Shown piece by piece: positions 19,998 through 57,571 of a DNA stretch of 64,000 bases (its first letter is position 1; each line of letters begins with the position of its first letter). Source of the stretch: Neoconidiobolus thromboides FSU 785 (Eukaryota > Fungi > Entomophthoromycota); the NCBI GenBank assembly GCA_025603075.1, contig MU626335.1, positions 28,116 to 92,115 of the forward strand, given 5' to 3'. The translations under genes were made by a program, and so were the position numbers. The notes beneath the pieces were generated by a model. The model made no database searches. It saw nothing but the letters and a program-made list of their open reading frames with translations, and was not told where the DNA came from.

Positions 19998-20189
19998 TGT
20001 TTTTATATAATAAACCAAAATAAAGGTTTTGATTACAAGTATGAATCTAGTATAATAATGTATTATGAATAGTTTAAATGTAAAAATTGCAATTGATTTA
20101 AATAATTTTATTTTTAATACAAATATAAATAAAGAGTAATATTGATTCAAGAGATTAATAATAACTACAAATTTTGTGTTATTACTAAC

Positions 20190-21353
20190 TTATAGTAATC
20201 CACCTAATAATCCACCGCTTTGTCTTTGACCTTGTTTTTGACTCCCAGTGCCAAGAAGATTATTAACAAAACCTCCAAATAAACTATTAGGTCCTAATAA
20301 ACCATTTATGAGACCTCCACTTGATTGAGTTTGGGATTGGGATTGTCCAGAGCTTCCAGTAGAACCTTGATTATAATTATAAGGATAGTTTCCATAATTA
20401 CCGTATGGATAACCCCCATAATTGTATCCGTAATTTCCATAATAATTCGATGGATAATTTCCATAATTGTATGAGTATCCGTTAGATGGATTGGTCCCAA
20501 ATTGAAATCCTCCATTGCTATTACCACCACTTACACTTTGAGATCCACTACCAAATTGGAATCCTCCATTAGTTGGATTACTTCCAGTTTGGGATCCAGT
20601 ATTAATTGAGCCACTTACACCTTGTGATCCACTTCCAAATTGAAATCCAACGCTATCAGAGCCAGTCCCACTTTGTGATCCAGGATTAGATGAGCTGCTT
20701 CCAAATTGGAAACCTCCATTGGCTGGGTTTCCTCCAAATTGAAAACCTACGCTACCAGGGTTGCCTCCATTTTGCGATCCAGGGCTAGGTGAACCATTTC
20801 CACTTTGTGACCCGGGATTAGATGAGCCGCTTCCACTTTGTGACCCAGGATTTGATGAACCATTTCCACTTTGTGACCCAGGGTTTGATGAACCATTTCC
20901 ACTTTGTGATCCAGGGTTTGGTGAACCACTCCCGAACTGGAAATCATTATTACCTGGATTTCCTGTAAATTGGAAACCCCCATTTGTTGGGTCAGCTCCA
21001 AATTGGAAACCTATGCCACCAGATCCACTTCCAGCTTGTATACCGGGATTTTGGGGCCCATTTCCGCTTTGTGCACCAGGATTTTGAGAACTGCTTCCAA
21101 ACTGGAAGCTTCCACTAGTTGGATCAGCACCAAATTGAAAACCAGCACTAGTAGGATTACCTCCGCTTTGTGCACCAGGGCTTGAAGAGCCACTTGGACC
21201 TTGTGATCCAGAATTAGATGATCCAGCACCAAATTGAAAGCCAGTATTAGGATAACCAAAGCCCTTTTTATCTACTGATGAATCAGTTTGAATATCACTG
21301 AGTGGAATAGCTAATGCAGAAGTTACTAAAGTTATGTAGAGAGGAAAGATCAT
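20190..21353 (-). CDS. Secreted Gly/Ser/Gln-rich repeat protein, array member 1 (387 aa)
   Basis: Signal peptide (MIFPLYITLVTSALAIP), SVDKKGF junction, 11 FQF(G/T) motifs, NPGSQSGNGSS repeats, a YGNY block, and C-terminus GGLINGLLGPNSLFGGFVNNLLG...GGLLGGLL. Confidence 0.85.
   Translation of the reverse strand: MIFPLYITLVTSALAIPLSDIQTDSSVDKKGFGYPNTGFQFGAGSSNSGSQGPSGSSSPGAQSGGNPTSAGFQFGADPTSGSFQFGSSSQNPGAQSGNGPQNPGIQAGSGSGGIGFQFGADPTNGGFQFTGNPGNNDFQFGSGSPNPGSQSGNGSSNPGSQSGNGSSNPGSQSGSGSSNPGSQSGNGSPSPGSQNGGNPGSVGFQFGGNPANGGFQFGSSSSNPGSQSGTGSDSVGFQFGSGSQGVSGSINTGSQTGSNPTNGGFQFGSGSQSVSGGNSNGGFQFGTNPSNGYSYNYGNYPSNYYGNYGYNYGGYPYGNYGNYPYNYNQGSTGSSGQSQSQTQSSGGLINGLLGPNSLFGGFVNNLLGTGSQKQGQRQSGGLLGGLL
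20768..20932 (-). repeat. Coding 33-bp tandem repeat (~5 units, NPGSQSGNGSS)
   Basis: Unit TGAACCATTTCCACTTTGTGACCCAGGATTTGA repeated on the + strand inside member 1. Confidence 0.9.
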
Positions 21354-21846
21354 AATTGATATTTTTATTCTTTTTTTGATGTTATTATAAGTACAATTTT
21401 AAGCTGTTTTTATATTGTATTTTCATTAATATCATTTATTTAAAGGCGTTCGATTTCTACACTGGATGTAGTTTTTTTAAAGCCTCACAAATCAATGAAA
21501 TCTTGAATTAAAAAAGACATGATTTTTTGATGGGCTTATTTTAACAATTAAAGTAGCCTGGTAAAAAGATTTTATTGATTTACTTACTATTACAACTATT
21601 TAAGTTTAAATGTTAAATAATAATGATTTTTATAACCACCAATAGTTTACATTGTTGGATTTTGAGTTTTAAAGCATGATTTTATTATTAAATGAACAGT
21701 TAAGTAGTGCAAATTTGATTTAAACAGTTGTACATCATTCACTTGAATTTCATGCATTGAATCAACTTAAATAAGGTTGATTTTGCAATAAAAGCCTTAG
21801 ATTAAATCAAATCAGATCAAATAGTAATTTTGTTCAAGTAATAAAT

Positions 21847-21944
21847 GGGACGAGTTTTTTTGTTTAAGAATTTTATTAAAAATTTTTTGATTCAAATATT
21901 GCTTAAAAAATAGAGAAAGTAATGAAATCAAAAATAACGTTCTC
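21847..21944 (+). mobile_element. MITE family 1 copy
   Basis: Family core, flanked AAAT/AAAT. Confidence 0.75.
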
Positions 21945-22705
21945 AAATTAAATGTTAAGTTAATATAAATTAATATTAAACAGCATAGTTATTTTTTATA
22001 AATCCATAATTTTTAAAAAGCCTTCTATTAAATAATCAAACTTGAAGTTGATTGATAATAACCCTTAGCAGTCCAAGTTCTGTTTGAATGGCCATCTGAG
22101 CACTTTGTATTATTTTTATCATAAAATACTTTATAATTTTGCATTTGTCAAGCACTAATTTAAAACTATCTTTTTTTCTATAATAAAGCTATTATTTTAA
22201 AAATTAAATCAATTTCATAATACAATTTTTTGATTGAATGAATATTTAAATTCAATGAATGTGTGTTATTAATATTTTTAAAAAAGTATTAAAAGATTGT
22301 TTTTACTTATCAAAAAAACTTTAGAATTTAATCTTGTATTTATATTACTTTGCATTTTTATAGTGGTTATTTTCAACCCAAGATTTATTTTTTATTCAAT
22401 TTTAATATATTTAAAGTTATAGTAAGGTAGAAGTATTATTAAAGAAAATGAAACGTAATGAGATTATGGCCCTTTTTTCCTCTTTATTCATTCATTTTTG
22501 TTAATAATACGTTTGAAAACTTATACTTTTTTATATATGTTTGAAAAAAGATTAGATGTTACAAAATACTTTTTTATAATTACTTTAAAATTAGAAGTTT
22601 AAATTTATCAATTTATAAACTTAGTTTATTAATTAAAAAATTGAATAAAATAAAATAAAATAAAATAACAGTATATGGAAACAGTTAATTAGTTAAATAC
22701 AACAT

Positions 22706-22804
22706 GGGAGTGTTTTTTTTGACTTCATTATTTTTTCCATTTTTAAGTACTATTTAAAGCGGAAAATTTGTTAGTAAAATTTTTAAACACAAAAATACAT
22801 CCCC
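22706..22804 (-). mobile_element. MITE family 1 copy
   Basis: GGGAGTGTTTTTTT...AAAAATACATCCCC. Confidence 0.8.
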
Positions 22805-22931
22805 GTATACGAATTTTCAATTTTGATAGTTTAATTGAAGTTAATTGAAATTGAAATTGAAATTGTTCCCAAATGAGTCTACTTTGATTTAAATGTGTAT
22901 CCTCAAAAATGAAATATTTAAATAAATATAC

Positions 22932-23030
22932 GGGAATAATTTTTTTGCTTTCATTACTTTTTCCACCTTTTAAGTGCTATTTGAGCCGAAACATTGTTAG
23001 TAGAATTCTTAAGCAAAAAAGTATATCCCC
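22932..23030 (-). mobile_element. MITE family 1 copy
   Basis: GGGAATAATTTTTTT...AAAAAGTATATCCCC with the family core. Confidence 0.8.
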
Positions 23031-23517
23031 ATATTATGAAAATAGTACGTATTATTAAAAAAGAACTTTTATCCTTTTTATCTTTTTTGATAATTTTCAG
23101 TTAATTTTTCTTAATTATAATAGTTGTGTTTTATCGATTTTAATTTATAAAACTTTAGCTGCTGACTTTTAGGAAAATATTAATTAATAAAAAATTAAGT
23201 ACTATTCTTTACTATAAAAAAAGTAAAATATAAAAACATTATGCTGAATAAATACTTTAAAAATTAATATTAGTATCAAATACAATTCCAAATAATAAAA
23301 TAAATCTGCTTTTAATATTTTCTATCAAATACTAAATAAACCTAAGTTATAAGCCTTTTTAATAAAAAATAGAATAAAAGTATCAAAGTAAGTTAAAAAT
23401 AAATCAAATATTATAATAAACGTTAAAAAATATATGTAAAAAGCGAAGATAAAGATAAATATGAAACAAATTTGCTATTAATTCGAAACAAAATAAAGTT
23501 AGTATTAAAAATTAAAT

Positions 23518-23614
23518 GGGGATGTATTTTGTATTTAAGAATTTTACTAGCAATTTTTCCACTTGAATAGTGCTTAAAAGATGGAAAAAGCGATGAAGCC
23601 AAAAAAACATCACC
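23518..23614 (+). mobile_element. MITE family 1 copy
   Basis: GGGGATGTATTTT...AAAAAAACATCACC flanked AAAT/AAAT. Confidence 0.85.
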
Positions 23615-24008
23615 AAATGCTGAAATTGATAAAGGCTTTGAATTAGAACTTACTAAATAAGGTAAATTAAAGTGATTTAAAAAAAATCAACTTTAAATTA
23701 AATGATCGAAAAACAGAAGCCCATTTGAATCTTAAATACCAAAAACCAGTCAAGAGAAAAGTAAAAAGTAAAAAATAAAATAAAATATTAATATTCTTAT
23801 TTCCCACTTATTTGAATTAAAAAAAGAACTTTGGGCTTTTAGTTCATCTTTAATTAAATTGATTTTATATCTATTCAATAGAACAGCATTCATTATTTAA
23901 GCCCATTTCTTTTATAATTAACGACCGATTCGAAGAGATTATAAAAACCTAGTTACAATCTTCAAAGTACAATATCAAATCAATCATTCTTAACATTAAA
24001 TCAAAAAA

Positions 24009-24488
24009 ATGAAAGCATCCGTTATTTACACTTCTATCTTATTTGCTATCACTTTAGCTGTACCAATTAATGAACAAGCTAATCAACAAGCTAATACTTC
24101 TACTTCATCTAATACAGATGGTAAAGTAGATGGTAAAGGTTTTGATTACAATGGCTATGGCGGCTATGGAGGTTATCCCTATAGCGGAGGTTATGGAGGC
24201 TATAATGGTTATAATGGAGGTTATAATGGAGGTTATAATGGAGGTTATCCTTATAATTATAATTATGGGACTAATTTTCAACAACCACAATCACAACCAC
24301 AACAACAACAGCAATCGGGAGGTATTTTAAATGGGTTATTAGGACCTAATGGTTTAGTTGGTGGTTTAGTTGGTGGCTTATTAGGCGGCGGTAGAGGACA
24401 AGCTCAAGGACAAGCTCAAGGACAAAGTAATGGACTATTAGGTGGATTGTTAGGTGGTGGTAACGGCGGTCTTTTAGGAATTTTATAG
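24009..24488 (+). CDS. Secreted Gly/Tyr-rich protein, array member 2 (159 aa)
   Basis: MKASVIYTSILFAITLAVP signal, KVDGKGF junction, GGYNGGY repeats, a Gln run, and GGILNGLLGPNGLVGGLVGGLLG...GLLGGLLGGGNGGLLGIL. TATAAAA ~70 nt upstream. Confidence 0.85.
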   Translation: MKASVIYTSILFAITLAVPINEQANQQANTSTSSNTDGKVDGKGFDYNGYGGYGGYPYSGGYGGYNGYNGGYNGGYNGGYPYNYNYGTNFQQPQSQPQQQQQSGGILNGLLGPNGLVGGLVGGLLGGGRGQAQGQAQGQSNGLLGGLLGGGNGGLLGIL

Positions 24489-25260
24489 ATAGGTAGGAGT
24501 AGAGTTTAACTTATTCTCTGCGAATTATATATATATTTATATTAAAATAAAAAATGAATTGAAAATTCGATTTTGTTAATGAATAATAATATAATTATAA
24601 TTTTGACATTTAAAATCTAAAAACTATCATTTCTATATTTAAATTAAAAATAAACATATATGATTTAAGTTTAATTTATAAAATACATTATTGATTGTTT
24701 TTTATTAATTTGTTCATTTTTCATTCAACGTAAAATTTACAAAATTACTATTTAATTATTTAAAAAAATCTTTAATATGCTTTATCTTATAATTCGAAAA
24801 GATGAGTAATTTTTATGAAATTTATTTTTTATTTATACTTTTGTACAAAATATTAAGATCAGAGAATAATTTTACCTTAGGTTTAAAGTTAGCTATAGTT
24901 TTTTCATATTATCTACAAAAAGTGCTCAAAATTAACTAATCAATATGAAAGAAACATCAAAAGCATAAAGCTTGTTTTAATTTATACTGAGAATTAATAA
25001 AGTTATAACAATTTAACCCAATATTTACTAGTTTACTATCTAACAGTCAATCCACAAACCGTAGCTCTATTAAATCACTACAATGTTAATTGAGTTAACA
25101 AACAAATCTTAATATATCTAATGAAGCCTATTTATTTCAACTAACAACTGCAAAACTAAAAGATATGTAAAAGAGAAACTATTACCTTTAAAATAAACAT
25201 AAAAAACTTCAATTTTGAGTTTAATTTTAACTTTAACTTTAACTTTAACCTTACTTAAGA

Positions 25261-25689
25261 ATGAAAGCTTTCTTTATTTTTATTTCATATTTATTCTCCT
25301 TAGTATTAAGTGAAGCAACTGAAGAACAAATCCTTACTGCTGATACTCAAGCTTCTACTAATATCAAACAAGCTTTCGCTTATACTCCTATAATTGGTAA
25401 ATCTTTCAATTACTCAGGTTATCGTAGTTTTAACAACTACCATAATTATGGAAGTAACGGTCACTCTTAACAACAACAGCAACAACAGTCGGGTGGTCTA
25501 TTAGATGGCATAATAGGATCTGATAGTTTAATTGGTAGATTAATTAAATCTAGTAATTTGATTCCAGGTATTGTTAATGGAGTGATTGGAGGACTTACTG
25601 ACCATAATGCATATGATTAAGAATAAGGACAAAATAATGGATTGTTAGATGAGGTTATTGAAATGAGACAATATACCTCTTTTAAATAG
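25261..25689 (+). pseudogene. Array member 3, truncated by TAA codons
   Basis: MKAFFIFISYLFSLVLSEA...IIGKSF...*QQQQQQSGGLLDGIIG...LIPGIVNGVIGGL...D*E*GQNNGLLD. TAA at 25468, 25618 and 25624 align with CAA codons of member 2. Confidence 0.8.
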
Positions 25690-25828
25690 TTTATAAAAGA
25701 TGAGGGGTTCGGAAGTTATTTATGGCCTTGGGATTATTAAATTTAAATTTATGTTTATATTGGAATAAAAAAGGAATTGGAATTAGTGTTGGTTTTATAA
25801 ATTTTGGAAAGAATGAATTTTATAATAT

Positions 25829-25993
25829 TTAGCTGCTGCAACTTTATTGTAGTCAAATCTGCAGTGATTTTTAGAATCAATTATTGTTTATTTGGTTTTT
25901 TAGAGCCTAGGTTTTTATTATAATCTGATTTTATCAAAATATTATTTCTAAATAAACAGTTAATTAGGTCATAAAAAAGCTTTAGCAGCTGTA
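25829..25993 (+). mobile_element. MITE-like family 3 copy
   Basis: Left end TTAGCTGCTGCAACTTT and right end AAAGCTTTAGCAGCTGTA (imperfect inverted pair). Shares GTGATTTTTA and GGTCATAAAA with the other copies. Confidence 0.45.
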
Positions 25994-26635
25994 TTAATAA
26001 AAAGTTGAAAGAAATATACACTTAAAAAAATCCAACTACAGTTATTGGGAGTCTGTTGGGACCTAATTTGTGGTAATTTTTAGAGTCAGTTGCTTTATTT
26101 TTTTGATGTTTAATAAAGATTTTATTCACTGTTAGATGAATCTTACTCATAAATGTGTAGTTAAAATTATATTGTAAAAGAGCCTCAACAGTTGGATTTA
26201 GGAATAAAAAACTTCTAAGAGTTTCAAATCGGGAAAAAAATTGACCGAGTTAATTTACCCATATTAATCTTACATATTAAGTTGTTTTTTGTATTTTTGG
26301 AATCTTTATGCAAGTAAAAGTGTTTAAAAAGTGATTGAATAACCACTGCAAAAGTTAAAAAAATTAACATTGAATTCAGTGTTAATTTTACATGTCGAGA
26401 ATAGCTTCTGCTGCAGTCGATAACATATTACTTACCATGTGTATGAAAAATTCCGAACATATAATGAGTGACTTATTAGGACCATTTAGGCTTTACTTTC
26501 AATACCAAAACTACCTGGGCTTTAATTTTTAGTTTCTTATTAACATGAATAAAAAAAGTAAATTATAGTTTCATAATAATTTATAGATTAGATTCGATCA
26601 ATCTAAGAAAGATTTCGAAATCTACAACAATATAT

Positions 26636-26732
26636 AGGGATATTTTTTTTGGCTTCATTGTTTTTTCCATCTTTTAAGCACTATTTAAGTGGAAAAATTG
26701 CTAGTAAATTCTCAAATACAAAATACATCCCC
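26636..26732 (-). mobile_element. MITE family 1 copy
   Basis: AGGGATATTTTTTT...AAAATACATCCCC flanked ATAT/ATAT. Confidence 0.85.
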
Positions 26733-26922
26733 ATATCGTTTAGTCAACCTATACTCACTACTTTAAATTTAATGTTTTCTTCCTAGAATGAAAAGTTAGA
26801 ACTTTTCTATAGTAAACGCTACCTTGGACATTGTTTTAACAAAAAAGTAGAATAAAAACAAAGTTCTCAAGTAAAAAAAGAAAGGAATAAAAATCAATTC
26901 AAATCATACATCTTGAAATTAA

Positions 26923-26930
26923 AAGCCCAT
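26923..26930 (+). promoter_or_regulatory. Candidate upstream motif AAGCCCAT of the secreted-gene array (example site)
   Basis: Also at 23717, 23899 and 28379, on the minus strand at 21530-21537, and as variant AAGCGCAT at 30371. All lie 110-295 nt upstream of array start codons. Confidence 0.4.
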
Positions 26931-27188
26931 TTTAATATTCAAAACAAAAATATTAAATATTAAAACTAGTTTAAAAGTTTAATTCAATGTCTTATTATTC
27001 TTATCTACATAACAATAAAGTAATCACGGCTTTCTACTTCAATCTAAAAATAAATTCTTTTAACAAACAAATGACAATTTACTTCTCTAAGCGCATTTAT
27101 TTAATACTATAATTACCAACTAATGACTATCGCCAAAATAATATATAAATGCCTGAAAACTATCTTCAAAATATAAAAAAACAAAATA

Positions 27189-27587
27189 ATGAAAACATAC
27201 ATTACATACATTCCTTTTTTATCAGCACTTACCCTAAGCTCACCAACAGATGAAAAAGTATCTAGTGAATTACAAGCTTCTAGTGATACTTCTGTAGATA
27301 ATAAAAGCTTCCTTTTCAACGGTAACAACGGTAACAACGGCAACAATAGAGGTAATAGAGGAAATAATTATCGTCAGCGCTGCCCTTTCTTTAATGGGTC
27401 TACTGGCTCTTCTGTAGATGGTAAAAGTTTGCTTTCGAGTGGTAAAAGCTGTCCCTTCCTTAAAAGATATAAAAGTGCTGGTCAACAACAACCTCAACCT
27501 CAACTACAATTTGATCCCCAGCCTCAAGAACCTCAACAAATACCCAAGCGTCAACAACAGCAACACCAAAAACAACAGCAACAATAA
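27189..27587 (+). CDS. Secreted Asn/Gln-rich protein, array member 4 (132 aa; C-terminus probably truncated)
   Basis: MKTYITYIPFLSALTLSSP signal, SVDNKSF and SVDGKSL junctions, two CPF motifs. Ends at a TAA inside a CAA run; a GGDLINEKDL remnant follows in a shifted frame. Confidence 0.7.
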   Translation: MKTYITYIPFLSALTLSSPTDEKVSSELQASSDTSVDNKSFLFNGNNGNNGNNRGNRGNNYRQRCPFFNGSTGSSVDGKSLLSSGKSCPFLKRYKSAGQQQPQPQLQFDPQPQEPQQIPKRQQQQHQKQQQQ

Positions 27588-28641
27588 CAATAACCGGGTT
27601 GGTGGGGATTTAATAAACGAAAAAGATCTGTAATATTTTTTATTTCTCTCTTCATAGTTTTTATATTTGTATTTTAATTTGCTTTTAAAAATTGAGTTAA
27701 TACCAATTATAAGCGTTTATAAATTGTCCTCAAATTAATGACATTTATTGAGAGGTAACAAATAATGTGACAACCTTTTTAAAAAAACTTGAAATCATAA
27801 ACCCTTTTAAAGTTTATTTATTGAACAATTTTGTTGAGGATATGGTTTAACGAAAGGGTATCAAAGATTGATAAAATAACGATTTCCATATTTTAGTAAT
27901 TTAAAATACTATAGCACTATACTTCGGTCAATTTTAATTTTATACACTAACTTACAATTAATAAATAATGAATACAATTTATATTGATATACTAGATCCA
28001 TATCAAATACTAAAAAGGTATATTTAAGAGCTAGTAAACTGTGTACTTACTATATTTACACGGGTTTTGTTTACATTTAGTAAATTTGAAAATTTATCTA
28101 AAGTTAATAAAAATTACTAGTTTGACTTGATCTAAATTCCCAAAATTTATAAGTGTATGTTTTCTTAATTTATTCTTTTGTTCACTTTTTATATAATATA
28201 AAACCTAAAAATAGCTTATGAATGAATACTAAAATAAAAAACATTACCATGTTCTTATTTTAGAACTAAAGAAAAAACACTATTTTCATAGTATTCTGCT
28301 TGAATTCTAATTTTGAGCTGAGTTTTACTCACATTATTTAGACAGCTAAAAATCAACTCAAGTTAAATACAAAACTGAAAGCCCATCTTAACATCAAAGC
28401 AAAGGGATCGCTAAAGAATAGCAATAGTATAATCTGATATGTTAGTATTTTATCACTACAAGGAAACAATGGCAGTAATCTTTCACTTCAATTCGAAATT
28501 GAACTGCTCTGGTAAACAAACAGCAACCTTAATTGATTAATCGCATAGATTCAATAATGATATAGCCAGTCTATAGTTACTTATCAAGAGATATATAAAG
28601 TCCTAACTTAATCTTCAAAAAATCAACAAAACAAAAAAATA

Positions 28642-29056
28642 ATAAAAGTATTTCTTGTCTATACTTCCTTGTTATTGGCTTTATTTTTAGTGTCTCAATT
28701 GATGAAAATATCTTTAATGACCTACAATTAAGTGCATGCACCTATATAACTAGTAAAAGTTTTCATTCCAAGGATAAAAAAGACTGTGATTGCAATGAAA
28801 TGTACCCAGTAGTGGTTATAAAATTGGAAATTATAAACAGAGCGATCACTCCACATAGAGCCATGGAAGTGTTAATCAGCTTTACCCTCAGCAACCTATG
28901 CAGCCTGAAAAGCCCAAAAAACCTCATCAAACTCATCCACTTCAAAGGCCTCACCAAATTCAACAGCGATAACGACACTTATAAGGTGGTGGATAGCAGC
29001 AAAAGCAATCGGATGGTGGCGACAATGGTAGAGATGTCCTTTCAGGGATTTTTTAA
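28642..29056 (+). pseudogene. Array member 5, pseudogene
   Basis: Start ATG replaced by ATA (ATA AAA GTA TTT CTT GTC TAT), frameshifts, ITSKSF junction, P/Q-rich block with TAA/TAG, ending QSDGGDNGRDVLSGIF*. Confidence 0.7.
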
Positions 29057-29932
29057 TTAATGTTAATTTACTTCATTTTTTATTATTCGGATTTTGCTTC
29101 GATATGTCTCCAAATAAAAACTAACTTTAAGCTAGAGTTATTTTATAATATTTGTAAACTATTTTTTGATAATCCAAAGTTTTATCAAGGGGTAATTATA
29201 GATACAGTTAATTTTATATTTATCAAAGGTGTAAAACTATTGTGTGTTTATTTATTTAGCATATTTAAGGGATGGTTTAATGAAGGAATAATAAAGGTTT
29301 AAAAAAATGAATCTTGATAGATCAATGATAATAGAATTATCTGTTAGTTTCATTTAACTCTATTTTATATATTATCTTACACTTAATAAAAAAAGAAACA
29401 CAACAAACGTTTTATCATTGTATTTAGTATTGCTATTTTTTAGCATTTACTCGACTCATTACTATTAGAGATGATTAAAAGCCAATATAATATACATTAA
29501 TAAAAGAAATCTATGTTAAATATCAAAAATATTTTACCCAAAGTCTAACAGTCTAAGCATATACCATTATACCATTACTCTATTGCTTAATTATCTATTA
29601 CTTAATTATCTATTGGTTAATTATCTATGGCATGTTTAAAAAATGATTTAATTAAAATTTCAATCAAAATCAAAATCAAAATCAAAATTGAAAAAATTAG
29701 TGAGCTTCATTGTTTATTAATTATCCATTCTTATGCAGCATTAAATTTTAGAAAAATCATTGCAAAAAAACATTTCCAAATAATTTTAAAGTTAATGTTG
29801 ACTTCTCCATACTATTCAGTTTATTCTTTATTTTTTATAAGAGATCATCCGGAAAATAATTGTACCTTGGGTCAAAATTTATCCACATATTGTTACAATT
29901 TAGACCATCTTTGAACTTTTTAATGCTTAAAG

Positions 29933-30120
29933 TATAGCTATTGCAGCTTTTTTACAAACTATTTAGCATGAATTTTTAGAATTAACTAATTTTTATAAAA
30001 GAGTTTTTGATGCACAATTCTTATATTTTGGAGAACTTTAGTAGTAACTTTATTCTTAAATAAACTGAAAAATAGTTGAAAATAGTTTTAACAGAGGTAA
30101 TTAGCTTTCAAAACTAGGTT
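29933..30120 (+). mobile_element. MITE-like family 3 copy (degenerate)
   Basis: TATAGCTATTGCAGCTTTTTTACAAACTATTTAGCATGAATTTTTAG resembles the 31871 left end. Confidence 0.4.
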
Positions 30121-30663: not shown

Positions 30664-31002
30664 ATGAAAGCATCTCTTATTTATACTTTGGCTTTATTAG
30701 GATATACCTTAGGTGCTCCAACTAGTGAAAATAGTTCTTCAAGTATACATAATTCTACTAATACTTCTATAAATGGTAAAGGTTTCCATTATGATGGTGG
30801 CTATGATGGTGAAAAAGATGGTCGATTTAGCCCTGGAAATTATGAAGGTACTTATAAGCCTCAAATACAAGCTAGACGATTCATACAGCAGCAGCAGGAA
30901 CAGCAACAACAGTTATGGGGCGGTGGGCAACAACAACAGCAACAGCAGTCAGGTGACGGACAACAACAACAACAGCAACAACAATCAGGCTGGTGGTGGT
31001 AA
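30664..31002 (+). CDS. Secreted Gln-rich protein, array member 6 (112 aa, ends SGWWW)
   Basis: MKASLIYTLALLGYTLGAP signal, SINGKGF junction, Gln runs. An out-of-frame SDRLLGLFK* remnant of the GGLLGIL terminus lies at ~31032-31061. Confidence 0.7.
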   Translation: MKASLIYTLALLGYTLGAPTSENSSSSIHNSTNTSINGKGFHYDGGYDGEKDGRFSPGNYEGTYKPQIQARRFIQQQQEQQQQLWGGGQQQQQQQSGDGQQQQQQQQSGWWW

Positions 31003-31614
31003 TAGATGACCATAAAATGTTAGGCCGAAGTAGTGATAGACTTTTAGGATTATTTAAATAGGATATCTTTTATATTTATGCCTCTCCCTACCTGCCAACA
31101 CTTTTTATATTTATATTCATCAAAATAAAAAACAAATTGTTTTTAGGTTATATCCGTTTATATGTTTTTTTTTTGAAATTGGGTTTTTTTACTAAGGAAT
31201 ATGAGTTTTTTTATACATTTGTTGGAGTTTCAGGCTTTCGAATGTCTTTTTACTATATTTAAAGTATACTCTATTAAGAAGTAAAAATATATAACTGTAA
31301 GAAAGTTTTTAGAATTCATGTTATAAAATAATTTAGATTTAGTCTGAATAAATGATAGTTACATGCTATTTTACACTTAAAAGACAAATATGCTCAATTT
31401 TTATTATTTCTGCCACTACTAAAATAAAAAAGTCAACACACATTACAAAATTAAACCCATACAAAATGTCAAATGCCTTTCATTTAAAACTTAGCAACAT
31501 AAATGAATGTATTGAGAACACCAATTGAATATATCGGATATTTTTTCTAATTTTTTGTCCATTTTCTGGCACATAAAATTTAAAAAATATTACTAGCGGA
31601 ATAATAATACATAT

Positions 31615-31711
31615 GGAGGTGTTTTTTTAGTTACATTACTTTTTCTACTTTTCGAGTGCTGTTCGAGTGGAAGATTACTGGTAGGGTTCTTAAGCAAAAA
31701 AACACATCTCT
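31615..31711 (-). mobile_element. MITE family 1 copy
   Basis: GGAGGTGTTTTTTT...AAAAAAACACATCTCT with the family core. Confidence 0.75.
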
Positions 31712-31870
31712 ATAAAAACACTTTATACTGTTATCTTAAAAGTAAACAAAAAAATGTCTCATAGTAGTCACTCTTATTTATAATATTCGTAATAAATCAA
31801 ACTTGAAAAACAATTGAATTTTAAATTTGAATTTACTTAGATTATTTTACATAACCTTGGGATTAAGGTT

Positions 31871-32520: not shown

Positions 32521-32787
32521 TAATAGAAAATATGCTTGATATTAAACTACTAAAAAAATATCTCAACATATTTTTAAAAAAATCTTTAAATTAAAACGCT
32601 AAATCTAAAATACAATTCGATATTTGAAGCAAGACAAATCAATAAAAAGAATAACAACTTTACTCAAATACCTTGTTATTTTATACGTACAAACAATAGT
32701 TTAAATTATTTATCGGATTAGTTAAATAATCTCACTATCAATTTGTAATTGTTTATTAAAAAGATATAAAAATACGATAAATAAATA

Positions 32788-33477
32788 ATAAAATCATCCC
32801 TTGTCAGTATTTCCTTATTTGCTTTAAGTTCAGGTGCCTCAACTGATGAACAAGCTTATATTGACACTCAAGAAAATACCAATACCTCGGAAAAAGTAAA
32901 ATTTTTCTTTACAGAGGTTCCAATGGTAGTAGCAGGGGTTTTAATGGAGGCGCTAGCGCAGGTATTCATGTAAGTATCAATATAAGGTATTCATGTAGGC
33001 TTCAATCGAGGCAATGTTGGGGGTATCAATGGAGGAATCAACATAGGCTTTGATTTAGGTATTAATAGAAGCTTTGATTAAGGTATTGGTATAGGTTTTG
33101 ATGGAGATAATAACCCAAGTTTCAATAGCGATACGAATAGGAGCTTTAATGTAAGTGACCGCAATCAATATTCAAGTGACTCTAACAGTCTTAGAGGCGG
33201 TGGCCAATCTCAAACTCACAGATGCAAACCTCATGGACTTAAACTTCAAAAACCCAGTAGAGCGCATAATGTAGGGAACCATGGTCAAATTTTCTCTAGT
33301 CCAAATAGTTATGAAGATAATGATCAACCTGAAGAACCTTATCCCCAACAATCTCATACTAAACCCCTGCACCAACCAAGTTGACAGAAATAGCAGTAAT
33401 AGTCAAGTGACGGACAACAGTACAACAGTAATCGGGCTACTGGTGGTAATAAAGGTGGTCTTTTGGAGATCTTGTAA
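32788..33477 (+). pseudogene. Array member 7, pseudogene
   Basis: ATA in place of ATG (ATA AAA TCA TCC CTT GTC), signal remnant, GIxxGF(N/D) repeats, P/Q block with TGA/TAG/TAA at Arg/Gln positions, ending GGNKGGLLEIL*. Confidence 0.75.
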
Positions 33478-34561: not shown

Positions 34562-34870
34562 ATGAAAGCATCTCTTGTCTATATACCCTTTTTATTAGCT
34601 CTTAATTTAAGTATACCAATTGATGATAAGGGCTCTACAGATGGCCAATCGATTGAAAAAGTTAAAGGTGCTGTTTCGCCTCAACTACAATCAATGAGTG
34701 GTTCTGGGAATCAAGTAGAACATAATGAGCAACGAAACCCTAGAGGTAGAAATTTATTTAGGCAGGCAAAAGCAATTCATGACTTTGGAAGTCTATCAAA
34801 TCAAGACACGCAAAGCAATTTGAATGAAAGGAATGTAAATAATCTAAACCAAGAGGTAAGCCGATCCTGA
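34562..34870 (+). CDS. Small secreted protein, array member 8 (102 aa)
   Basis: MKASLVYIPFLLALNLSIPIDDK signal of the family type, ATG in AAAATG context, TATAAAA ~58 nt upstream. The payload is divergent. Confidence 0.65.
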   Translation: MKASLVYIPFLLALNLSIPIDDKGSTDGQSIEKVKGAVSPQLQSMSGSGNQVEHNEQRNPRGRNLFRQAKAIHDFGSLSNQDTQSNLNERNVNNLNQEVSRS

Positions 34871-35749
34871 AAGTCAAGTGGGGGGAAATAGGCACAAATA
34901 ATCAAGTGGTGATATGAAAATAAATTACTAGATTAATATTAGTAGTGGCAAGTTTTAAGAGCTTGATTTTGAAGATACAGCTTATTTTTTGTTCTCCTTT
35001 TCCATCATCGCATTATATAATTATACGTTTAAATAAAAAATAGATTAAATTAAATTTTGATTTTATAAGGTTTATAAATTGCCCTTTTGCTAACTATTAG
35101 TTTTTATTGAGAGATAGGGAATAATACGATTATTTTACATCTTTCCTCATAAATCTTTAAGCATTTTAGAATACTAATGAGTCAAGGTAGTAAACAACTG
35201 CGTTACGAATTTGGCAAAATGTAAAAGAGTATGATTAAAAAGCATTAGTAGCTTTTTCAAAGGTAGCATGGAAATATCATATACTATATATTTAAATGCC
35301 TATTTTTGTTTTGTTAGAAAAGTATTTTAATTTCATTTATCTATTATTTAGCTTTATTTCTATTTCCAAAAATTATTGATGCTTTTTAGTGTTACTATTT
35401 TATACCAACTATAATTTTTTGGTATTATTAGAATACAATTAAAGGCATATTATCATTTATTAATACCTTGATTTTTAACGAAAGTATGTAAAAAAGGCAC
35501 CTATATTATTACGTAGTTTTATTGTTGTATCAAAGTATTATAAAAACATGGGGTATTTTTTTCGTTTCATCAATCTTTCCATTTTTTACTCTCTACTTCA
35601 TATCACTCTAGATTTATATCTATATTTATAGCAAATTAAAAAAATAAATTATAATTAATTTAGATATAAATAATTTATAAGCTAGTCTAGTTAAAACTAA
35701 AGGCTTTTGTAAAGGCAAAAAGACAAAAAACAAATATGACCTCACTTTT

Positions 35750-36460: not shown

Positions 36461-37267
36461 GATATTTTCTTATTGCTTGTTGTATAGGGATGTATTTTTT
36501 TTTAAATTTATTAATGATCCTTCCGCTCAAACAACGCTTAAAGTTTTCATATTATATAAGGGATGTTTTTTTGATTTTAAAACAAGTTAAGCAAGCGTTA
36601 TATTGTTACAAAAATATTAATACATAATACCAAAGTTAATTTTAATGACAATATTAAAATCATGTTTGTGTCAAAATCACAATTGCTGTTATGATTAGGG
36701 TTAATAGTAAACACTGTGATTAGTTAATGTTTAAAACAAAAAAGCGGCTAATTTTGTTTACATTATTAATATTAAGTAATATTCAATATTTCAATAAAAT
36801 AAATTTCATTACTAAAAATATCAAACTAAACAACGTTATAAAAGTATTGCTTTTTGAATAGAATTTTTTAAATTCAATAAAACAAAACTTTTAAATACAA
36901 ATTTAAATTATTAAAAGCTGTATTCTATATTTTAAATAAGCTATCATTATTTTATCATAGTCTAAAAATATTACTATCAATTATTTTAATGCTTAAACTG
37001 TTTTTAATGTGTATTGCAGTTGGCTTTAATTTATCCCTTTTAAAAAATTTCATCTTTACAGCCACACCATCTAAGTAAAAATTAGATCATTCGCATTACT
37101 TTTATTTAAATTTGTGACTACATAACTATACTTAAAAATATCGATAATAACTGATTATATTAGTGTAACTGTATAACAACTTCTCAGAGAAATGTATAAA
37201 AGCATCAACTTTTACCTTCTAATAGACATAGAAATCCCAAATTCAATATTTTAAATAAACAAAAACA

Positions 37268-37474
37268 ATGAAAACATCTTTTGTCTATGTTCTCTCTTTA
37301 TTAACCTTTACTTTAAGTGTTCCAGTTGGTGAGCAAGCTTCTGCAGATGAAAATCAAGTTCAAAAAGCTGCTACTGGAAACGTAGCTCAACAGGTACCAC
37401 CGTTAGTTGGAGATAGAAAAAGAGGTAAAAAAGAAGGTCTATTAGGTGGTACACTTATACCAGGAATCTTATGA
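37268..37474 (+). CDS. Prepro-peptide, array member 9 (68 aa)
   Basis: Signal MKTSFVYVLSLLTFTLSVP, Q/A/E-rich pro-region, basic cluster RKRGKK, then EGLLGGTLIPGIL*. TATAAAA ~73 nt upstream. Confidence 0.75.
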   Translation: MKTSFVYVLSLLTFTLSVPVGEQASADENQVQKAATGNVAQQVPPLVGDRKRGKKEGLLGGTLIPGIL

Positions 37475-38305
37475 ATATTAAATCTATAGCTATTTTAACC
37501 TTTCAACGATACTGGAATATATTTTGTGCTTCAAAATAAAAATAAACTGAAACTAATCTTTATTTTGTAAAATTATTTCTAATTTCTTTATATTAAACTT
37601 TTTGACTATATTGAATAGTTTGCAAATAAAAAAGGAATAAATGGTAGTTTTGTAACAATTCTACTTTGTTTATTTGAAAAACCACTTGAGGTCTAAATCC
37701 TTTCATAAATTTTAGAAAAAAAGTTAACGGATAGTAACACAACTCTTTTTTGAAAATGGGTGCTTGAGTTAACTTTGCCATATCAAGTTGAATGTTAATT
37801 TTAAATTTATAAAATTACATAAAATCAAACGTAACCCTAAACTAGATCAATCACAGCTGTTTAAATTTAAACATCCATATTCTCGCAGAAACTATTTGGC
37901 TATTATTTAGTGCTTACTTTAAAGCTTAATCTTGGCTTTGACAAAATTTAGATTTAAAATTCTATTCATAAATGAACACAGCTAGTATTATATAATTGAA
38001 CTTTAACAGCTCTAAAACCAAATTTTAAGTAACACTAAAACAATAAATTGTTTAAATGTGTTAAAGCCAGCTTTAGTACATCCCTTTCAAAAAATTTCAT
38101 GCTTATAGTCACACTAACTATTTAAGTAAACTTTAGATCATTCGTATTACTTCTATTTAAATCGGTGTGTACTTATGTGGCTTTCATTTAAAGGTATTGA
38201 TAACTGACTATCTTGGCATAGTTAAATAACTCAAAAAAGTGTAAAGATATCAACTTTACCTTTCAGAGATATAAAAAGCTTGAATTTAATACTAAAAAAG
38301 TAAAA

Positions 38306-38485
38306 ATAGCAAAAGTATATTGTTTGTGTCATCTCCTACTAACTTTTACTTTAGGCATTTCAATTGGTGAATAAGTTTCTGAAGACGAAAATCAAGTTCG
38401 AGAAGCTGCTACTGGAAACGTAGCTCAACAGGCATCACTATTGACTGGAGGTAAAAAAGGAGACTTATTGGATGAGATCCCATAA
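38306..38485 (+). pseudogene. Array member 10, decayed tandem duplicate of member 9
   Basis: LLTFTLGISIGE*VSEDENQVREAATGNVAQQASLLTGGKKGDLLDEIP*. CAA>TAA at 38372, no intact ATG, and flanks homologous to member 9 at an offset of ~1.05 kb. Confidence 0.8.
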
Positions 38486-39107
38486 TATAAATATTTAGTT
38501 ACTTTTTAACCCTCTGAATATATTGTAATTTATATCTATGTTTCAAAATAAAAACAAGTTGAGACTAATTTTTGTTTTTGTAAAATTGCTTCTAATTTTA
38601 AAACCAATATTTTTAGCAACCATATTAAACTATTTGTAAATAAAAAAAGAAAAAGGGGGGCCTTGTAGTATGACTCTGCTTTATTTTGATATGTATTTTT
38701 TTATAGATTACTTGAGATATAAATCCTTTAAAACTCCATAGAAAAACTTTTAATGAATATTAAATACAGTTTAATGTGTAAAATTGACACATGGATAATT
38801 TGCTTATAAAAATTACCATAAATCAGATTTCAAAAGAGCTATAACAGCTGTAATCATAGTTTATTTAAAATAAGCTATAGTTGCTTTAATTTGTTCTTTT
38901 AAAAAAGAATTATACTACAGTAGCTATTAAATATTAATTTTATTTTGAATTAATGTATAACTATATAATCATATTTGTAAACTGATAGAAGCATTGATTA
39001 TCTAGATATAATAGTATACAGCAGCTTATTAAAAAGATATACTAAAGTATTGAATTTAATCTTAAGATATATAATAAATTAAATTCACTATTTCAAAAGC
39101 ATAAATA

Positions 39108-39260
39108 ATAAAGTTACTGTTTGTCTATATCTTCTTTTTGTTAGCTTTTATTTTGACTATTTTACTTAATAAATTAACTTCTGCTAATAAATAAATTAAA
39201 AAGTTACTATTGAAATATAGCTTAATGATATCATTAGTAGCTGGTAGTAAAAATCAAATA
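39108..39260 (+). pseudogene. Array member 11, heavily decayed copy of member 9
   Basis: ATA AAG TTA CTG TTT GTC TAT ATC TTC TTT TTG TTA GCT TTT aligns to the member 9 signal. GAAATATAGCTTAA vs GGAAACGTAGCTCAA shows C>T/G>A decay. Confidence 0.55.
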
Positions 39261-39623
39261 AAACAAAAATAATAAAAATGAAAATAAGTTTATCAAGTTT
39301 GAACTTTTCAGGGCTTTAATAAATAATTTATAGCTATTTTTAATTATTTGATTATTTATAATTTATATATTTATTTTATAGTACTACTTATAATTTTTAT
39401 TAATATTAATGGATTTTGTTAATGAGTTATTAAAAATTTTGCAAATGAAAGGATAAAAAAATAATAACTTTATAACTTATTTTTGCTTTGTGTTTATAAT
39501 TATTTATATTTATTAATAAAATATTTAAAAAATAGTTAGCAAATCATAACAGTTTTCAAAAATTGATATCAAAAACTATTTCATTTTGCTAAATTAATTG
39601 ATCAAACTAGATTTTATATATAT

Positions 39624-39711
39624 GGGGATGTATTTTTGTGTAAGAATTTTACTAATAATTTTTTCACTCAAATAGCGCTTAAAAGATAGAAAAAGTAAGA
39701 ATAAAAAACCC
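39624..39711 (+). mobile_element. MITE family 1 copy (small internal deletions)
   Basis: GGGGATGTATTTTT...AAAAAACCC flanked ATAT/ATAT. Confidence 0.8.
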
Positions 39712-40021
39712 ATATATAATTTGAGATCTAATTTAATTTAATTTTTTAGAGATTTATAAAAAATAAAAAATATTTAAAATGTATTAAAATTAACTTTAGT
39801 TTAAAGTATTTTATTATTTTTATTATGTTATCACTAAATTATCATGTCATACTGTTTTTGTTAGTTATATTCTAAATCACATTTATTAATATGCAGCTAT
39901 TTATTAAAAAAGTATATAAAATCTTAATTATATATATAATACTAACTATTTTTTTAAAATTCTATATAAGTTTCTTATTAAAGAGCAAAAACACTTAATA
40001 ATTTCATATCATTTATCATAA

Positions 40022-40450
40022 AATGCTGTAAGATATCGCTTTGTCAGCTCCATGATTGATTATAACATGGTAATCACTCAAGTCGTTGTGTTCTCGAGTT
40101 CAGGCACAATCAATTCCGGACCTTTTATTTTGATTTGCTATGAGAATTTCTGTCATGTAATTCTGGAGGACATTATCTCTCCGTTTTAGTATTCATACTT
40201 CTTGGAGTATAAAAGGAATTCTAGAAAATAACAACTCAAGACTTTCTAATTGAATTAGTCCCTGATATTGTACCTTCAATAAAGCCATTAAATCTTTCCG
40301 ATAGTATTTTACGTAGATTTTACAGCAGTATTGTCTATTCTATTTGTGTTACATAATCCGTAGCCTATTACGTCTGCATCCTTGATGCTTCAAGTCTACC
40401 TTAGTTATATAAACCAAGACCTTTCGACTTACAGTTAGTTAATCAAGCAA
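40022..40450 (-). mobile_element. LINE ORF2 post-RT relic; homolog of 63602-64000
   Basis: Clear nucleotide similarity to 63602-64000 (ATATCGCTTTGTCAG, GTATTGTCTATTCTATTTGT, AAGACCTTTCGACTTA). The minus strand reads KSKGLGL...RNRL...NRQYCCKIYVKYY, resembling the K..GGLGL motif after non-LTR RT domains. Confidence 0.5.
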
Positions 40451-41651
40451 AAACTTTACTAAAGTGATGTACTGATATTAAGTAAAGTTATAATATATGA
40501 ATCGCATTGGTAAAGTTTTTGCTGATATAGCAACTTTTACCAAACTTAATAAAAATTCTGCTAGTTTATAATACATATTATAACAAAATAATTTAAAGTT
40601 ATTAAGTATTTTGCTTTTTGATAAAAAATTTATTTTTATAAATCTTAAGAGGTTTTTGAAATACAAAATATTTAAAAATTGAGTAAAAAAATAAAACTGA
40701 TTTGAATATTCCCTAATTTCTTTTAAAAAAGTTCAAAAAGCTACAGTAAAAAGTTTAATAGGTGCTTTTAAAAAACTACTCCTAAATAAAATATTTAGAT
40801 AAGTTAGTTCAAATAAAGTTGTTCTAATTAACTATAGAGCCTTATCTTGGCAATAACTAATTTATGTGAAAAACAAGTACTGGTTTACTAACATAGCTAC
40901 AAAAAATTACTAAACTCTAACTTAACTATTCTGACTAAAAAATGGATTTTATTTGTTAGACTAAAACAGATCAGTGTTACTAAATCTTACCTTATTGGCC
41001 TCTGATTGGTTAATTTACCATAAATGAGTTACAATAGTTACATTAGATTTCCTTTATTTAGATATCTTTGTGAATATATACAACTATGGCTGCATCTATG
41101 ATTGGAAACTTTTAAATTTGCAAGACTGGATTTACTATCAATAATTGCGTTTTTATTGTGGTTTTATATTGCGCTAGTAAGAAATAAATAAGCTATTAGT
41201 TACAATAGTTAACTATTTTTATATTTAAAAACAATTTAGTTTTGAAAAATAGTCTAATACAGTTATACTTATCGATCTCTCTCTTATTTGATAAAAATAA
41301 TGGGTATATGTTTTTAGCGTATACCAAGAAAATCAACAACTATAGCTGCTTTATAATTCTGTATCCTCATCACTTAATCCTTGAATCAAAAAAAGATAAC
41401 TGTCTTTAAGATATTTCTTAGAATTACGCTAACTAGTTGGGGTAAAATATTAGATCATTTTCGTTTACTTTTATTTTTTAATTGCATATATAACAATGTT
41501 AAATAAATTGATTAAAAATAGCTATAAAAATTATCTTTCATTTAAATGTAACAAGTTGTAACTTTTATTTTAAAAAAGTATATAAAAGGCATCAATTATT
41601 ATTTACAAAAACACAAATAAATAAATATTAGTATTAAAAGCAGTAAACAAA

Positions 41652-41828
41652 ATGAAAGCATCTCTTGTCCTTATCTCCTCATTATTAAGTTTGACATTAA
41701 GTATACCAATAGCTGAAAACTCTCCTATTGGCATACAAGTTTTAAACATTAGACGTAATATTGAATCAGAAGACCAATTGCTAAGAGATATTTTAAATCT
41801 AAAAGAACCCCTTTTAATAAAAGTTTGA
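41652..41828 (+). CDS. Small secreted prepro-peptide, array member 12 (58 aa; absent from the ORF track)
   Basis: MKASLVLISSLLSLTLSIPIAENSPIGIQVLNIRR/NIESEDQLLRDILNLKEPLLIKV*. Family signal peptide, RR site, TATAAAA at 41581. Confidence 0.6.
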   Translation: MKASLVLISSLLSLTLSIPIAENSPIGIQVLNIRRNIESEDQLLRDILNLKEPLLIKV

Positions 41829-42304
41829 AAAGCGATGGTTTAGCTATGGTATTTAGATTCAGATTTTATATAACTTAAAACAAAATAAAGATAGAGTGAT
41901 AGTAATGATAGACAATGAACTCTATAGAAATTGATTATCCTTTCTAAAATTCTATAAATATTAAAGATCCATTTTATTTTTATTATTACCCTGTGTATTT
42001 TTATCTTTAATAAAATGAAAAACTATTAGAAATTAAATTTTTCTTTGACAATTGATCACTTTGGTTAATAAGATATAGTTGTATTTATTTTAAGTGATTG
42101 TTTGAATTTTCAATAGCAGCTTTTAAAGGAAATGATCATAAAAGATGTAATATACTTAAAATGGGCTGTAATTATTTTTAACTATTTCTTTTAAAGTGAT
42201 TTCTTTATTCACAGTTATACTGACTGATTAAACTAATATTATATCACTTTTATTCGTTTTAAACAGTTATGTAACAGCATACTACTACACACCAAAAGGA
42301 CATT

Positions 42305-42506
42305 GTAAATGTATTTCCCTGTTTAAGAATTTTACTGATAGCCTTTCTGCTCAATATAAAGAGCGCTTAAAAAATGGAAAGAGTGTGGAAATAAAAACAC
42401 CTCTATATTGGGGCGAATTTTTGTATTTGAGAATTCTACCAATAATCTTTTCACTCAAATAATGCTTAAAAGATGGAAAAAGTAATGAAGCCAAAAAAAC
42501 ACCCCC
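42305..42506 (+). mobile_element. Two tandem MITE family 1 copies sharing a central ATAT
   Basis: Copy A ends AAAAACACCTCT, ATAT follows at 42405-42408, and copy B runs 42409-42506 ending AAAAAAACACCCCC-ATAT. Confidence 0.75.
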
Positions 42507-42765
42507 ATATACTGACGTCTTTTTTACCTTTGTTCATTTATCTATCTTCTATGTAATAAAAAAGAGATATTTTACTCATGATATCTATGAATAAAAGGTA
42601 TTTTTATTTGATAACTTTGATCATTTAAGTATGACATTAAATTAGTTTTGAGCACTATTAATTTACTATGTAACAGTGTATGAATACTTTATAAAAAAGT
42701 ATATAAAGAAACCACTTTTAATCCTTTAAATATAAAAAACCAACTTCAATATTAAAAAACAAACA

Positions 42766-43146
42766 ATGAAAACATCTTTTATCTATATTTCTTTTTCATC
42801 ATTTTTTGCTTCAAGCGTGCTAATTAGTGAAAAAGTTCCTATTAAAAGACAAGTTCAAGACGTTAGACGCGCTGGTCAAACTCAACTATACTTGAAACTT
42901 GGTTTTGGAAACCAAATAGAACAAAGTATCTAGTGTAATAATTTTGATAGGAATGTAGGTGCTGAAGCATAAAAAGGTTTTGGAAGTCACTTTGCTTCTA
43001 ATTCTAGAAGTAACTTCAATGATGATAACGTAAGTAATCAAATACAATCAAAGCTTAGTTTTGGAGATCAAACAGATTAACTACATAATCAGGTACTATA
43101 ATTCTCTTAACCAAGGACAACTAATGCCTGAACCTGAGAATTAAAT
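42766..43146 (+). pseudogene. Array member 13, truncated by TAG/TAA
   Basis: MKTSFIYISFSSFFASSVLISEKVPIKRQVQDVRRAGQ...LGFGNQIEQSI* (TAG at 42931). Read-through continues KGFGS...LSFGDQ with further TAA codons. Confidence 0.65.

Positions 43147-55818: not shown

Positions 55819-57571
<1,753 letters not shown>

Follow-up and report, generated by a model that had tools for sequence, protein, structure and literature searches.

A tandem array of putatively secreted low-complexity proteins in Neoconidiobolus thromboides and its possible role in a cohesive extracellular coat

Described surface and peptide systems and the array

Hydrophobins, which are defined by eight conserved cysteines that form four disulphides, are to our knowledge confined to the Dikarya, so that the Entomophthoromycotina should lack them, and we know of no basis for the water repellence and adhesion of entomophthoromycotine aerial hyphae and sticky ballistic conidia. 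Here we analyse a 23-kb tandem array of 13 loci (M1 to M13, named from left to right) for putatively secreted low-complexity proteins in the genome of Neoconidiobolus thromboides FSU 785, an entomophthoralean insect pathogen, as the organism had correctly been guessed to be before. The array lies in a window of 64 kb, the whole stretch of DNA that was analysed, which represents the final 64 kb of contig C78, 92,115 nt in length, in an assembly of 24.6 Mb and 799 contigs (C10, C16, C42, C49, C78 and C279 are contig labels within this assembly). Six further loci, three on C49, two on C10 and one on C279, bring the family to about 19 loci in the genome; M1 and M2 are referred to as canonical members together with the paralogues on C10 and C49. 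A possible role as a surface coat on aerial structures is what the family might have in common with hydrophobins; the canonical members contain no or a single cysteine and have no match in Pfam, the hydrophobin entries PF01185 and PF06766 included, in agreement with an earlier interpretation of the window made from its letters alone (the sequence-only reading), which had held that they are not hydrophobins.

The described fungal systems that come closest are the Rep1 repellents of Ustilago maydis and the KEX2-processed repeat proteins (KEPs), secreted and cysteine-free proteins that are thought to serve as hydrophobic or amphipathic surface material replacing hydrophobins. In both, one polyprotein contains numerous core peptides, each bordered by KR sites (PMC3133707, PMC7329392, PMC9769878), and the repellents of Ustilago assemble on aerial hyphae into amyloid fibrils of amphipathic character (PMC3133707). 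The family of the array differs from them by only one or two units of a Gly-Leu tail, by a long low-complexity body and by the lack of any sequence similarity, and repeated cores between KR or RR sites were found in no family member. Secreted glycine-rich proteins (GRPs), as known from plants (PF07172) and from tick cement, are similar in that a signal peptide is followed by a Gly/Tyr-rich region of low complexity. GRPs have cement or wall roles, and in ticks glycine-rich proteins predominate in the cement cones (PMC6591454). GRPs are however devoid of the order of leader, junction, body, Gln stretch and Gly-Leu tail that characterises the family, and M2 reached 17.4 bits (E 0.007) against PF07172, for which the gathering cut-off is 30; the other members gave no match to this entry.

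Cohesive FG-nucleoporin and prion-like domains form gels. Their regularly spaced Phe or Tyr stickers, separated by uncharged spacers rich in Asn, Gln, Gly and Ser, recur in the family, the composition of M1 resembling the GLFG domains of nucleoporins and that of M2 prion-like domains rich in Gly, Tyr, Asn and Gln. Such domains are intracellular, whereas the proteins of the array carry a putative signal peptide, and what the two have in common is composition and not homology. Plasticins, finally, are Gly/Leu-rich frog-skin peptides, around 23 residues long and with GxxxG motifs, that cleavage at a KR site frees from a precursor of the dermaseptin type. They share with the family the Gly-Leu segments with GxxxG spacing as well as a conserved signal and leader ahead of a hypervariable downstream part. 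Plasticins belong to another kingdom, however, and the canonical members have no KR before a tail that is neutral and of low hydrophobic moment, consist mostly of body, and revealed no relation to frog precursors in word-based or exhaustive profile searches. Tandem clusters that encode secreted low-complexity proteins and are specific to one lineage are a familiar kind of locus; it is the design of leader, junction, uncharged body and Gly-Leu tail that sets this family apart, together with its occurrence in a fungus in which a search for class I hydrophobins, run without a positive control, gave no match.

Paralogy, architecture and evolution of the family

Several sequence comparisons confirm that all 13 loci are true paralogues, and every start coordinate that the sequence-only reading had assigned to them was correct. 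A repeat search grouped nine of the loci by a 67-nt direct repeat (61-70% identity) that covers the start codon and the signal peptide. A DNA profile of the signal region, trained on the initial 82 nt of eight loci that start with ATG and run over the 64 kb, matched the untrained M7 (E 2.7e-10), M5 (E 4.4e-9) and M10 (E 5e-4) and gave no further significant match in the window beyond the array loci. M11 scored weakly (E 4.3, not significant), but the blastn comparison confirms it through a homology of 740 nt to the unit of M9 (37018-37739, E 4e-27); positions 23755-23799 of the window were masked in the nhmmer and blastn comparisons. Searched with a profile, the whole genome (24.6 Mb) yielded 14 matches, nine of which are located inside the array. 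Homology between many pairs of units reaches into the promoters and 3' flanks in addition to the coding sequence, so that the units are segmental duplicates: M1 shares 639 nt with M2, comprising the tail and the 3' flank, and homology extends over 1.1 kb between M5 and M6, in which case it covers the whole unit, and over about 1 kb between M9 and M10. A TATAAA motif is present at positions -80 to -40 in nine of the 13 loci as compared to 9% of random positions (binomial P 1.7e-7). This enrichment substantiates the earlier statement that most members have TATAAAA upstream; the distance, which had been given as about 60-75 nt, varies more widely (-45 to -76 from the start). The genes of the family are small, intronless and TATA-driven.

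Inspected by eye, with a positive n-region, a hydrophobic h-region of 10-15 residues and small residues at -3 and -1 as the rule of thumb, the members of the array share signal-peptide-like N-termini, which in most of them consist of MK, about 14 hydrophobic residues, T-L-A/S and x-Pro (M1 lacks the Lys); the loci on C10, C49 and C279 have a sister type of signal, MKYLFIA.... In the canonical members the signal peptide is followed by a net-acidic leader, a junction with the consensus S-V-[DE]-x-K-x-[FY], a low-complexity body, a Gln-rich stretch and a neutral Gly-Leu tail of one or two units per gene. The junction had previously been called basic, which is correct with respect to one conserved Lys; a dibasic junction is not a feature of the canonical members. 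This Lys marks a sharp switch in composition, since in all seven canonical members the leader is net acidic, 14-42% charged and 0-5% aromatic, and the part past the junction is 0-4.6% charged and 11-61% aromatic (1.7% charged in M1). M4 and M6 break this two-part pattern with 16% charged residues past the junction. The bodies are rich in Gly, Asn, Gln and aromatic residues and nearly uncharged, and they cannot be aligned between genes: M1 features FQFG with 11-residue spacers (about 14 stickers in 11-residue, 33-nt repeats), M2 has GGYN and the C49 and C10 members have YPY.

The paralogues on C49, C10 and C279 keep the order of the modules: leader and S-V-[DE]-x-K-x-[FY] junction are followed by a body rich in Tyr, Gly and Pro, by a Q/Y stretch and by a tail (for example NPSILGSIFGxNGLVNSILGTGK) that can be aligned to the first of the tail units in M1 and M2. 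The last two residues of the C10 members are G-K, and C49b and C49c have lost the tail. The tails show hydrophobic pairs every four residues, GxxxG-type spacing and a hydrophobic moment of 0.06-0.22. They are neutral, save that those of the C10 members terminate in a Lys and that of M9 contains a Glu. We agree with the sequence-only reading that the tail is closely conserved between M1 and M2, that it is recognisable as GGLLEIL in M7, VLSGIF in M5 and LIPGIL in M9, and that the open frames M8, M12 and M13 have no clear tail. The calculated net charge of the mature proteins is -4 to +1 (-4 to -1 for the canonical members) and that of the mini-peptides of M9, M12 and M13 is -2 to 0. Cysteine is absent from M1, M2, M6, M8, M9, M12, M13, C49a-c and C10a; C10b contains one and M4 two. 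Dibasic sites are limited to a KK at the junction of M1, two KR in M4, RKRGKK in M9, RR in M12, and KR plus RR in M13; the sequences of M2 and the C10/C49 members contain none. The Kyte-Doolittle mean of the last 20 residues ranges from -0.6 (M1) up to 1.0, with values of 0.9-1.0 for M2, C10a and C10b, and the best 19-residue window of M2 reaches about 1.2 by hand calculation, which is under the usual transmembrane threshold. Structure prediction of M2 by AlphaFold2 with the family alignment gave a pLDDT of 48 and weak short helices at residues 106-125, in the first tail unit only, and the ESM Atlas model had a pLDDT of 0.44; according to these models the canonical proteins are predicted to be disordered. 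Modelled self-association of the tail (four copies of M2 residues 98-159) had a score of 0.04 and permits no verdict. Structural look-alikes of the ESM Atlas model were dismissed because of TM values <0.35 on a model of such low pLDDT.

The array evolves by tandem duplication, slippage of the body repeats, repeated loss of the tail and decay, which conforms to the earlier description of a birth-and-death array with variable payload. The tandem repeats of the bodies are young, with units of 33 nt and 89% match in M1 and of 12 nt and 100% match in M2 (Tandem Repeats Finder, positions 20000-43500 of the window). Nei-Gojobori dN/dS ratios of five pairs of intact members were 0.19-0.59 at a dS of 0.8-1.3; these figures are rough due to low-complexity alignment and saturation, yet all are below 1, which roughly indicates that the intact members are coding and under constraint. 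Over the first 63 coding nucleotides (24009-24071 and the equivalent positions of the other loci with ATG), the column entropy is 0.72, 0.71 and 0.80 bits by codon position versus 1.35 bits in the 63 nt upstream. As the entropy is nearly equal at all three codon positions, the secretion cassette is conserved as DNA and not just as a peptide, which suggests a DNA- or RNA-level constraint, or gene conversion, on the signal DNA in addition to selection on the peptide. The array is also a compact case in which a secretion cassette is kept and the exported part is reinvented by slippage, truncated or lost. A directional mutation resembling repeat-induced point mutation was dismissed for the M9/M10 pair, in which the substitutions are symmetric (58 C>T plus G>A versus 60 T>C plus A>G; 64% transitions).

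No Pfam family matched above its cut-off, and word-index protein searches returned one compositional match with M2 and none with M1. M2 was looked up as an exact sequence in public assemblies and is not recorded there. An exhaustive search of 1.84 billion protein representatives with a profile built from the family gave six matches. Four of them are paralogues from the same genome. The fifth, a spider aciniform spidroin, aligns with profile positions 27-95 only, in 18 stretches, and we read it as compositional. The sixth is DFA_06325 of Cavenderia fasciculata (XP_004362029.1; GL883007.1, examined stretch 6001-8109), a protein of 669 amino acids with a signal-like N-terminus and about 20 GLLTSLLGTGLLGK repeats that are split by Asn-rich and EYQRQLAxLRAL spacers. 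It is secreted-looking and the only non-self match to the tail part of the profile (tail positions only, E 5e-7), but it is multi-repeat and has neither junction nor aromatic body; most likely the match reflects a short low-complexity motif that arose by convergence. Considered by itself, this hypothetical dictyostelid protein looks like a multi-copy precursor of Gly-Leu peptides. The library searched contains neither M1 nor M2 and thus covers entomophthoralean genomes incompletely. A literature search found no published description of the family. The earlier statement that no named family is recognisable stands, and by these comparisons the family is to be regarded as real and as new; we take it to be an orphan that is restricted to the species or lineage.

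Putative function and alternative explanations

We propose, at a probability of roughly 45%, that the canonical proteins constitute a cohesive extracellular coat or adhesive, which retains as plausible the surface-active or adhesive part of the sequence-only reading. In such a scenario the proteins would be secreted via the N-terminal signal, with the charged acidic leader keeping the sticky body soluble during export, and the leader may be cut off after the Lys of the junction. Once outside the cell, the uncharged aromatic body would self-associate on the surface of hyphae or conidia, forming a gel, a film or a cement, and the Gly-Leu tail would aid in assembly or in the hold on the surface. 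The Tyr residues may be cross-linked by the many tyrosinases of the genome, for which the Tyr-rich bodies are plausible substrates, and M9, M12 and M13 may have shifted to a design of short peptide precursors that contain dibasic sites. The tyrosinase entry PF00264 has 34 matches, about 30 of which are near full length and over the Pfam cut-off, a strikingly large set for a genome of 24.6 Mb. Examples are located at C42:87127-87681, at five positions on C16 and, at the start of the contig that carries the array, at C78:146-682. The proposal is supported by the two-part composition of the canonical members, their predicted disorder, low cysteine content and near-neutral charge, by the recent slippage in the bodies, by the tyrosinase set and by the lack of any class I hydrophobin match in a genome search run without a positive control, with the Ustilago repellents and the tick cement proteins as published analogies.

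A more specific version of this proposal, which we hold to be unlikely as a whole, is that, in a lineage that has no hydrophobins, the family serves as coat or glue of the conidia, which are aerial and forcibly discharged; the leader would act as a chaperone, the body would condense, tyrosinases would cure the material and the tail would seat it. If true, the family would represent a new class of fungal surface protein. An orphan, presumably secreted and uncharged sticker-and-spacer family is a concrete candidate for the surface repellence and adhesion of Entomophthoromycotina, and it is of possible interest for protein-based adhesives and gels.

Several points weigh against a coat or adhesive. 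Functional assignments from composition are weak in general, the call of a signal peptide follows a rule of thumb, and a cleavage at the junction Lys may be assumed by pure inference. The tail has been lost from M4, M6, C49b and C49c, which are otherwise open, and because of these repeated losses it may not be essential. The search for class I hydrophobins had no positive control. Two sequencing runs that we guess to be RNA hold 9% and 3% of the words sampled from positions 20100-29900 of the window (9.8 kb), counts that are not interpretable on their own; four DNA sequencing runs hold 69-98% of the sampled words, and near-identical DNA is present in three other samples. Furthermore, M1, M2, M6, M9, M12 and M13 are absent from the public protein set of the National Center for Biotechnology Information (NCBI), although M1 and M2 are intact. 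The same set contains the exact ORFs of M4 and M8, and a C49 and a C10 paralogue are exact matches to the annotated proteins KAI9296006.1 and KAI9298329.1, respectively. It seems that the published annotation either omits the best array members or gives different models for them.

As an alternative, which appears doubtful to us, the genes could encode precursors of bioactive peptides with host-directed, antimicrobial or signalling function, in which signal and leader would form the cassette and proteases would free the Gly-Leu tail or the C-terminal peptides of the mini-members to act on membranes or receptors. A conserved secretion cassette that is combined with a hypervariable downstream part is the pattern of frog peptide and conotoxin gene families, and this is how the array is built. 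Kex2-like convertase loci are present in the genome, the basic site of M9 is positioned directly before its Gly-Leu peptide, and RR or KR precede the last 20-23 residues of M12 and M13. The C10 members end in G-K, and the tails have a GxxxG-type spacing like that of the plasticins (Carlier et al. 2015, as cited in PMC6591454). The canonical members are difficult to reconcile with such precursors: they lack a dibasic site beside the tail, most of the protein is a long low-complexity body for which a peptide precursor has no evident use, and one or two tail units per gene are unlike Rep1 or the KEPs (PMC3133707, PMC7329392). A precursor layout of the Kex2/Rep1 type, to which the sequence-only reading had likened the entire array, fits only M9, M12 and M13, as there is no KR or RR around the one or two tail units of canonical members. 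We also depart from that reading where it considered toxins: the neutral tails, their low hydrophobic moment and the net charge of the mature proteins speak against a classical toxin or antimicrobial peptide, and neither tails nor mini-peptides combine the positive charge and high helical moment of cationic amphipathic antimicrobials.

It is improbable, in our view, that the array is a silent graveyard of genes, i.e. a decaying remnant whose open frames are scarcely made into protein. Of the 13 copies, M3, M5, M7, M10 and M11 are dead and another five are truncated or atypical, so that the earlier estimate of about half pseudogenes is a fair one; the missing annotation of M1 and M2 and the near absence of sampled words from the possible RNA runs also favour this explanation. 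On the other hand, dN/dS between intact members is well below 1 (albeit at a dS of about 0.8-1.3), promoter TATA boxes are retained, the perfect young repeat units of M2 keep the reading frame, and the public annotation includes intact paralogues from other contigs. If the family were silent or trivial, the array would be one more lineage-specific cluster of low-complexity genes. Wall-bound structural proteins with the Gly-Leu tail as a glycosylphosphatidylinositol (GPI) attachment signal or as a membrane or wall anchor, comparable to SsGSR1 of Sclerotinia, are very improbable despite the combination of an N-terminal signal with a hydrophobic-leaning C-terminus (M2, C10a and C10b) and the existence of glycine-rich GPI wall proteins in fungi (PMC10269696), because, by rule of thumb, the C-termini lack the family-wide conservation expected of a GPI signal, with its omega site, polar spacer and hydrophobic tail of 15-20 residues: M1 has a polar spacer, QKQGQRQ, with only about eight Gly-Leu residues behind it, Lys is the last residue of the C10 members, the best window of M2 stays below the transmembrane threshold and several open copies have no tail.

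State of the loci and neighbouring elements

The coordinates and the state of the individual loci are compiled in Table 1. An ATA codon takes the place of ATG in all four dead copies that have no start codon, and the first stop of M3 is a TAA at the head of its Gln (CAA) run.

Table 1 Loci of the array and copies of an interspersed element (positions in the window)
Feature	Position	Strand	State	Modules and remnants
M1	20190..21353	-	intact, 387 aa, with tail	signal, leader ending SVDKKGF, FQFG repeats, Gly/Tyr/Asn block, Ser/Gln stretch, Gly-Leu tail ending GGLLGGLL
M2	24009..24488	+	intact, 159 aa, canonical member; TATAAA at -69	signal, leader, KVDGKGF junction, GGYN repeats, Gln run, two Gly-Leu tail units
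M3	25261..25689	+	dead; in-frame stops 25468-25470, 25618-25620, 25624-25626	Gln run and decayed tail still readable in the same frame; homologous to 3' half of M2
M4	27189..27633	+	open frame 132 aa (27189-27587) ending in Gln run	tail remnant in another frame (27595-27633); junction module duplicated internally
M5	28642..29056	+	dead; ATA at start position, frame changes; signal profile match	junction remnant 28746-28775; Gln/tail remnant 28973-29056 ending VLSGIF
M6	30664..31061	+	open frame 112 aa (30664-31002) ending just past Gln runs (SGWWW)	decayed tail remnant in another frame (30987-31061)
M7	32788..33477	+	dead; ATA at start position, several stops and frame changes	GIxxGF-type payload; tail remnant at the end
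M8	34562..34870	+	open frame 102 aa; signal and leader intact, no aromatic body	QRNP motif, which marks the tail start in C10/C49 paralogues, but tail not recognisable; homologous to M12 and M13 units
M9	37268..37474	+	intact mini-member, 68 aa, with tail; TATAAA at -73	signal, leader, RKRGKK site, 13-residue Gly-Leu peptide
M10	38306..38485	+	dead duplicate of M9, 65% identity	ATA at start position, in-frame stop in leader, deletion across basic site
M11	39108..39551	+	heavily decayed copy of M9 unit	ATA at start position, stops from codon 29
M12	41652..41828	+	open frame 58 aa; TATAAA at -71	signal, short leader, RR, 23-residue weakly amphipathic peptide (net charge -2); no Gly-Leu tail
M13	42766..43080	+	open frame 55 aa (42766-42933)	signal, KR and RR sites, 20-residue peptide; decayed sequence goes on in frame past the stop
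MITE-like copy	42405-42515	+
MITE-like copy	21846-21952
MITE-like copy	22706-22808
MITE-like copy	22927-23034
MITE-like copy	23509-23623
MITE-like copy	26637-26741
MITE-like copy	31606-31714
MITE-like copy	35556-35606
MITE-like copy	39590-39728
MITE-like copy	42309-42410

The window, which has a G+C content of about 26%, reads with the standard genetic code. The ORF for UDP-glucose pyrophosphorylase at 55819-56871 (minus strand) reaches the end of the Pfam profile (413/413), where other UDP-glucose pyrophosphorylases presumably end as well, and then stops with TAA; since, in addition, TAA, TAG and TGA all close long ORFs in the window, an alternative code that would read through the in-frame TAA codons of the array was ruled out. 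Short introns do occur in the window, but they were ruled out as the cause of the broken copies because each break is a single in-frame stop or a frame slip, with homology running straight across it.

At least ten copies of an interspersed element of about 110-115 nt, which resembles a miniature inverted-repeat transposable element (MITE) and has the terminal inverted repeats TATGGGGATGT...ACACCCCCATA, are present between the genes of the array in both orientations (Table 1). A search of the genome gave 2511 first-look candidates, of which the 40 that were scored are 80-92% identical, and one copy adjoins the C10 cluster (C10:112861-112968). The ORFs 19443-19997 (plus strand) and 2580-3245 (minus strand) are paralogous to each other (30% identity over 121 aa, E 5e-11), have no match in Pfam and may be exons of larger genes. 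Each of the two is convergent to a gene for a secreted low-complexity protein, namely M1 in the case of the former and an S/N-rich ORF at 1368-2387 in the case of the latter.

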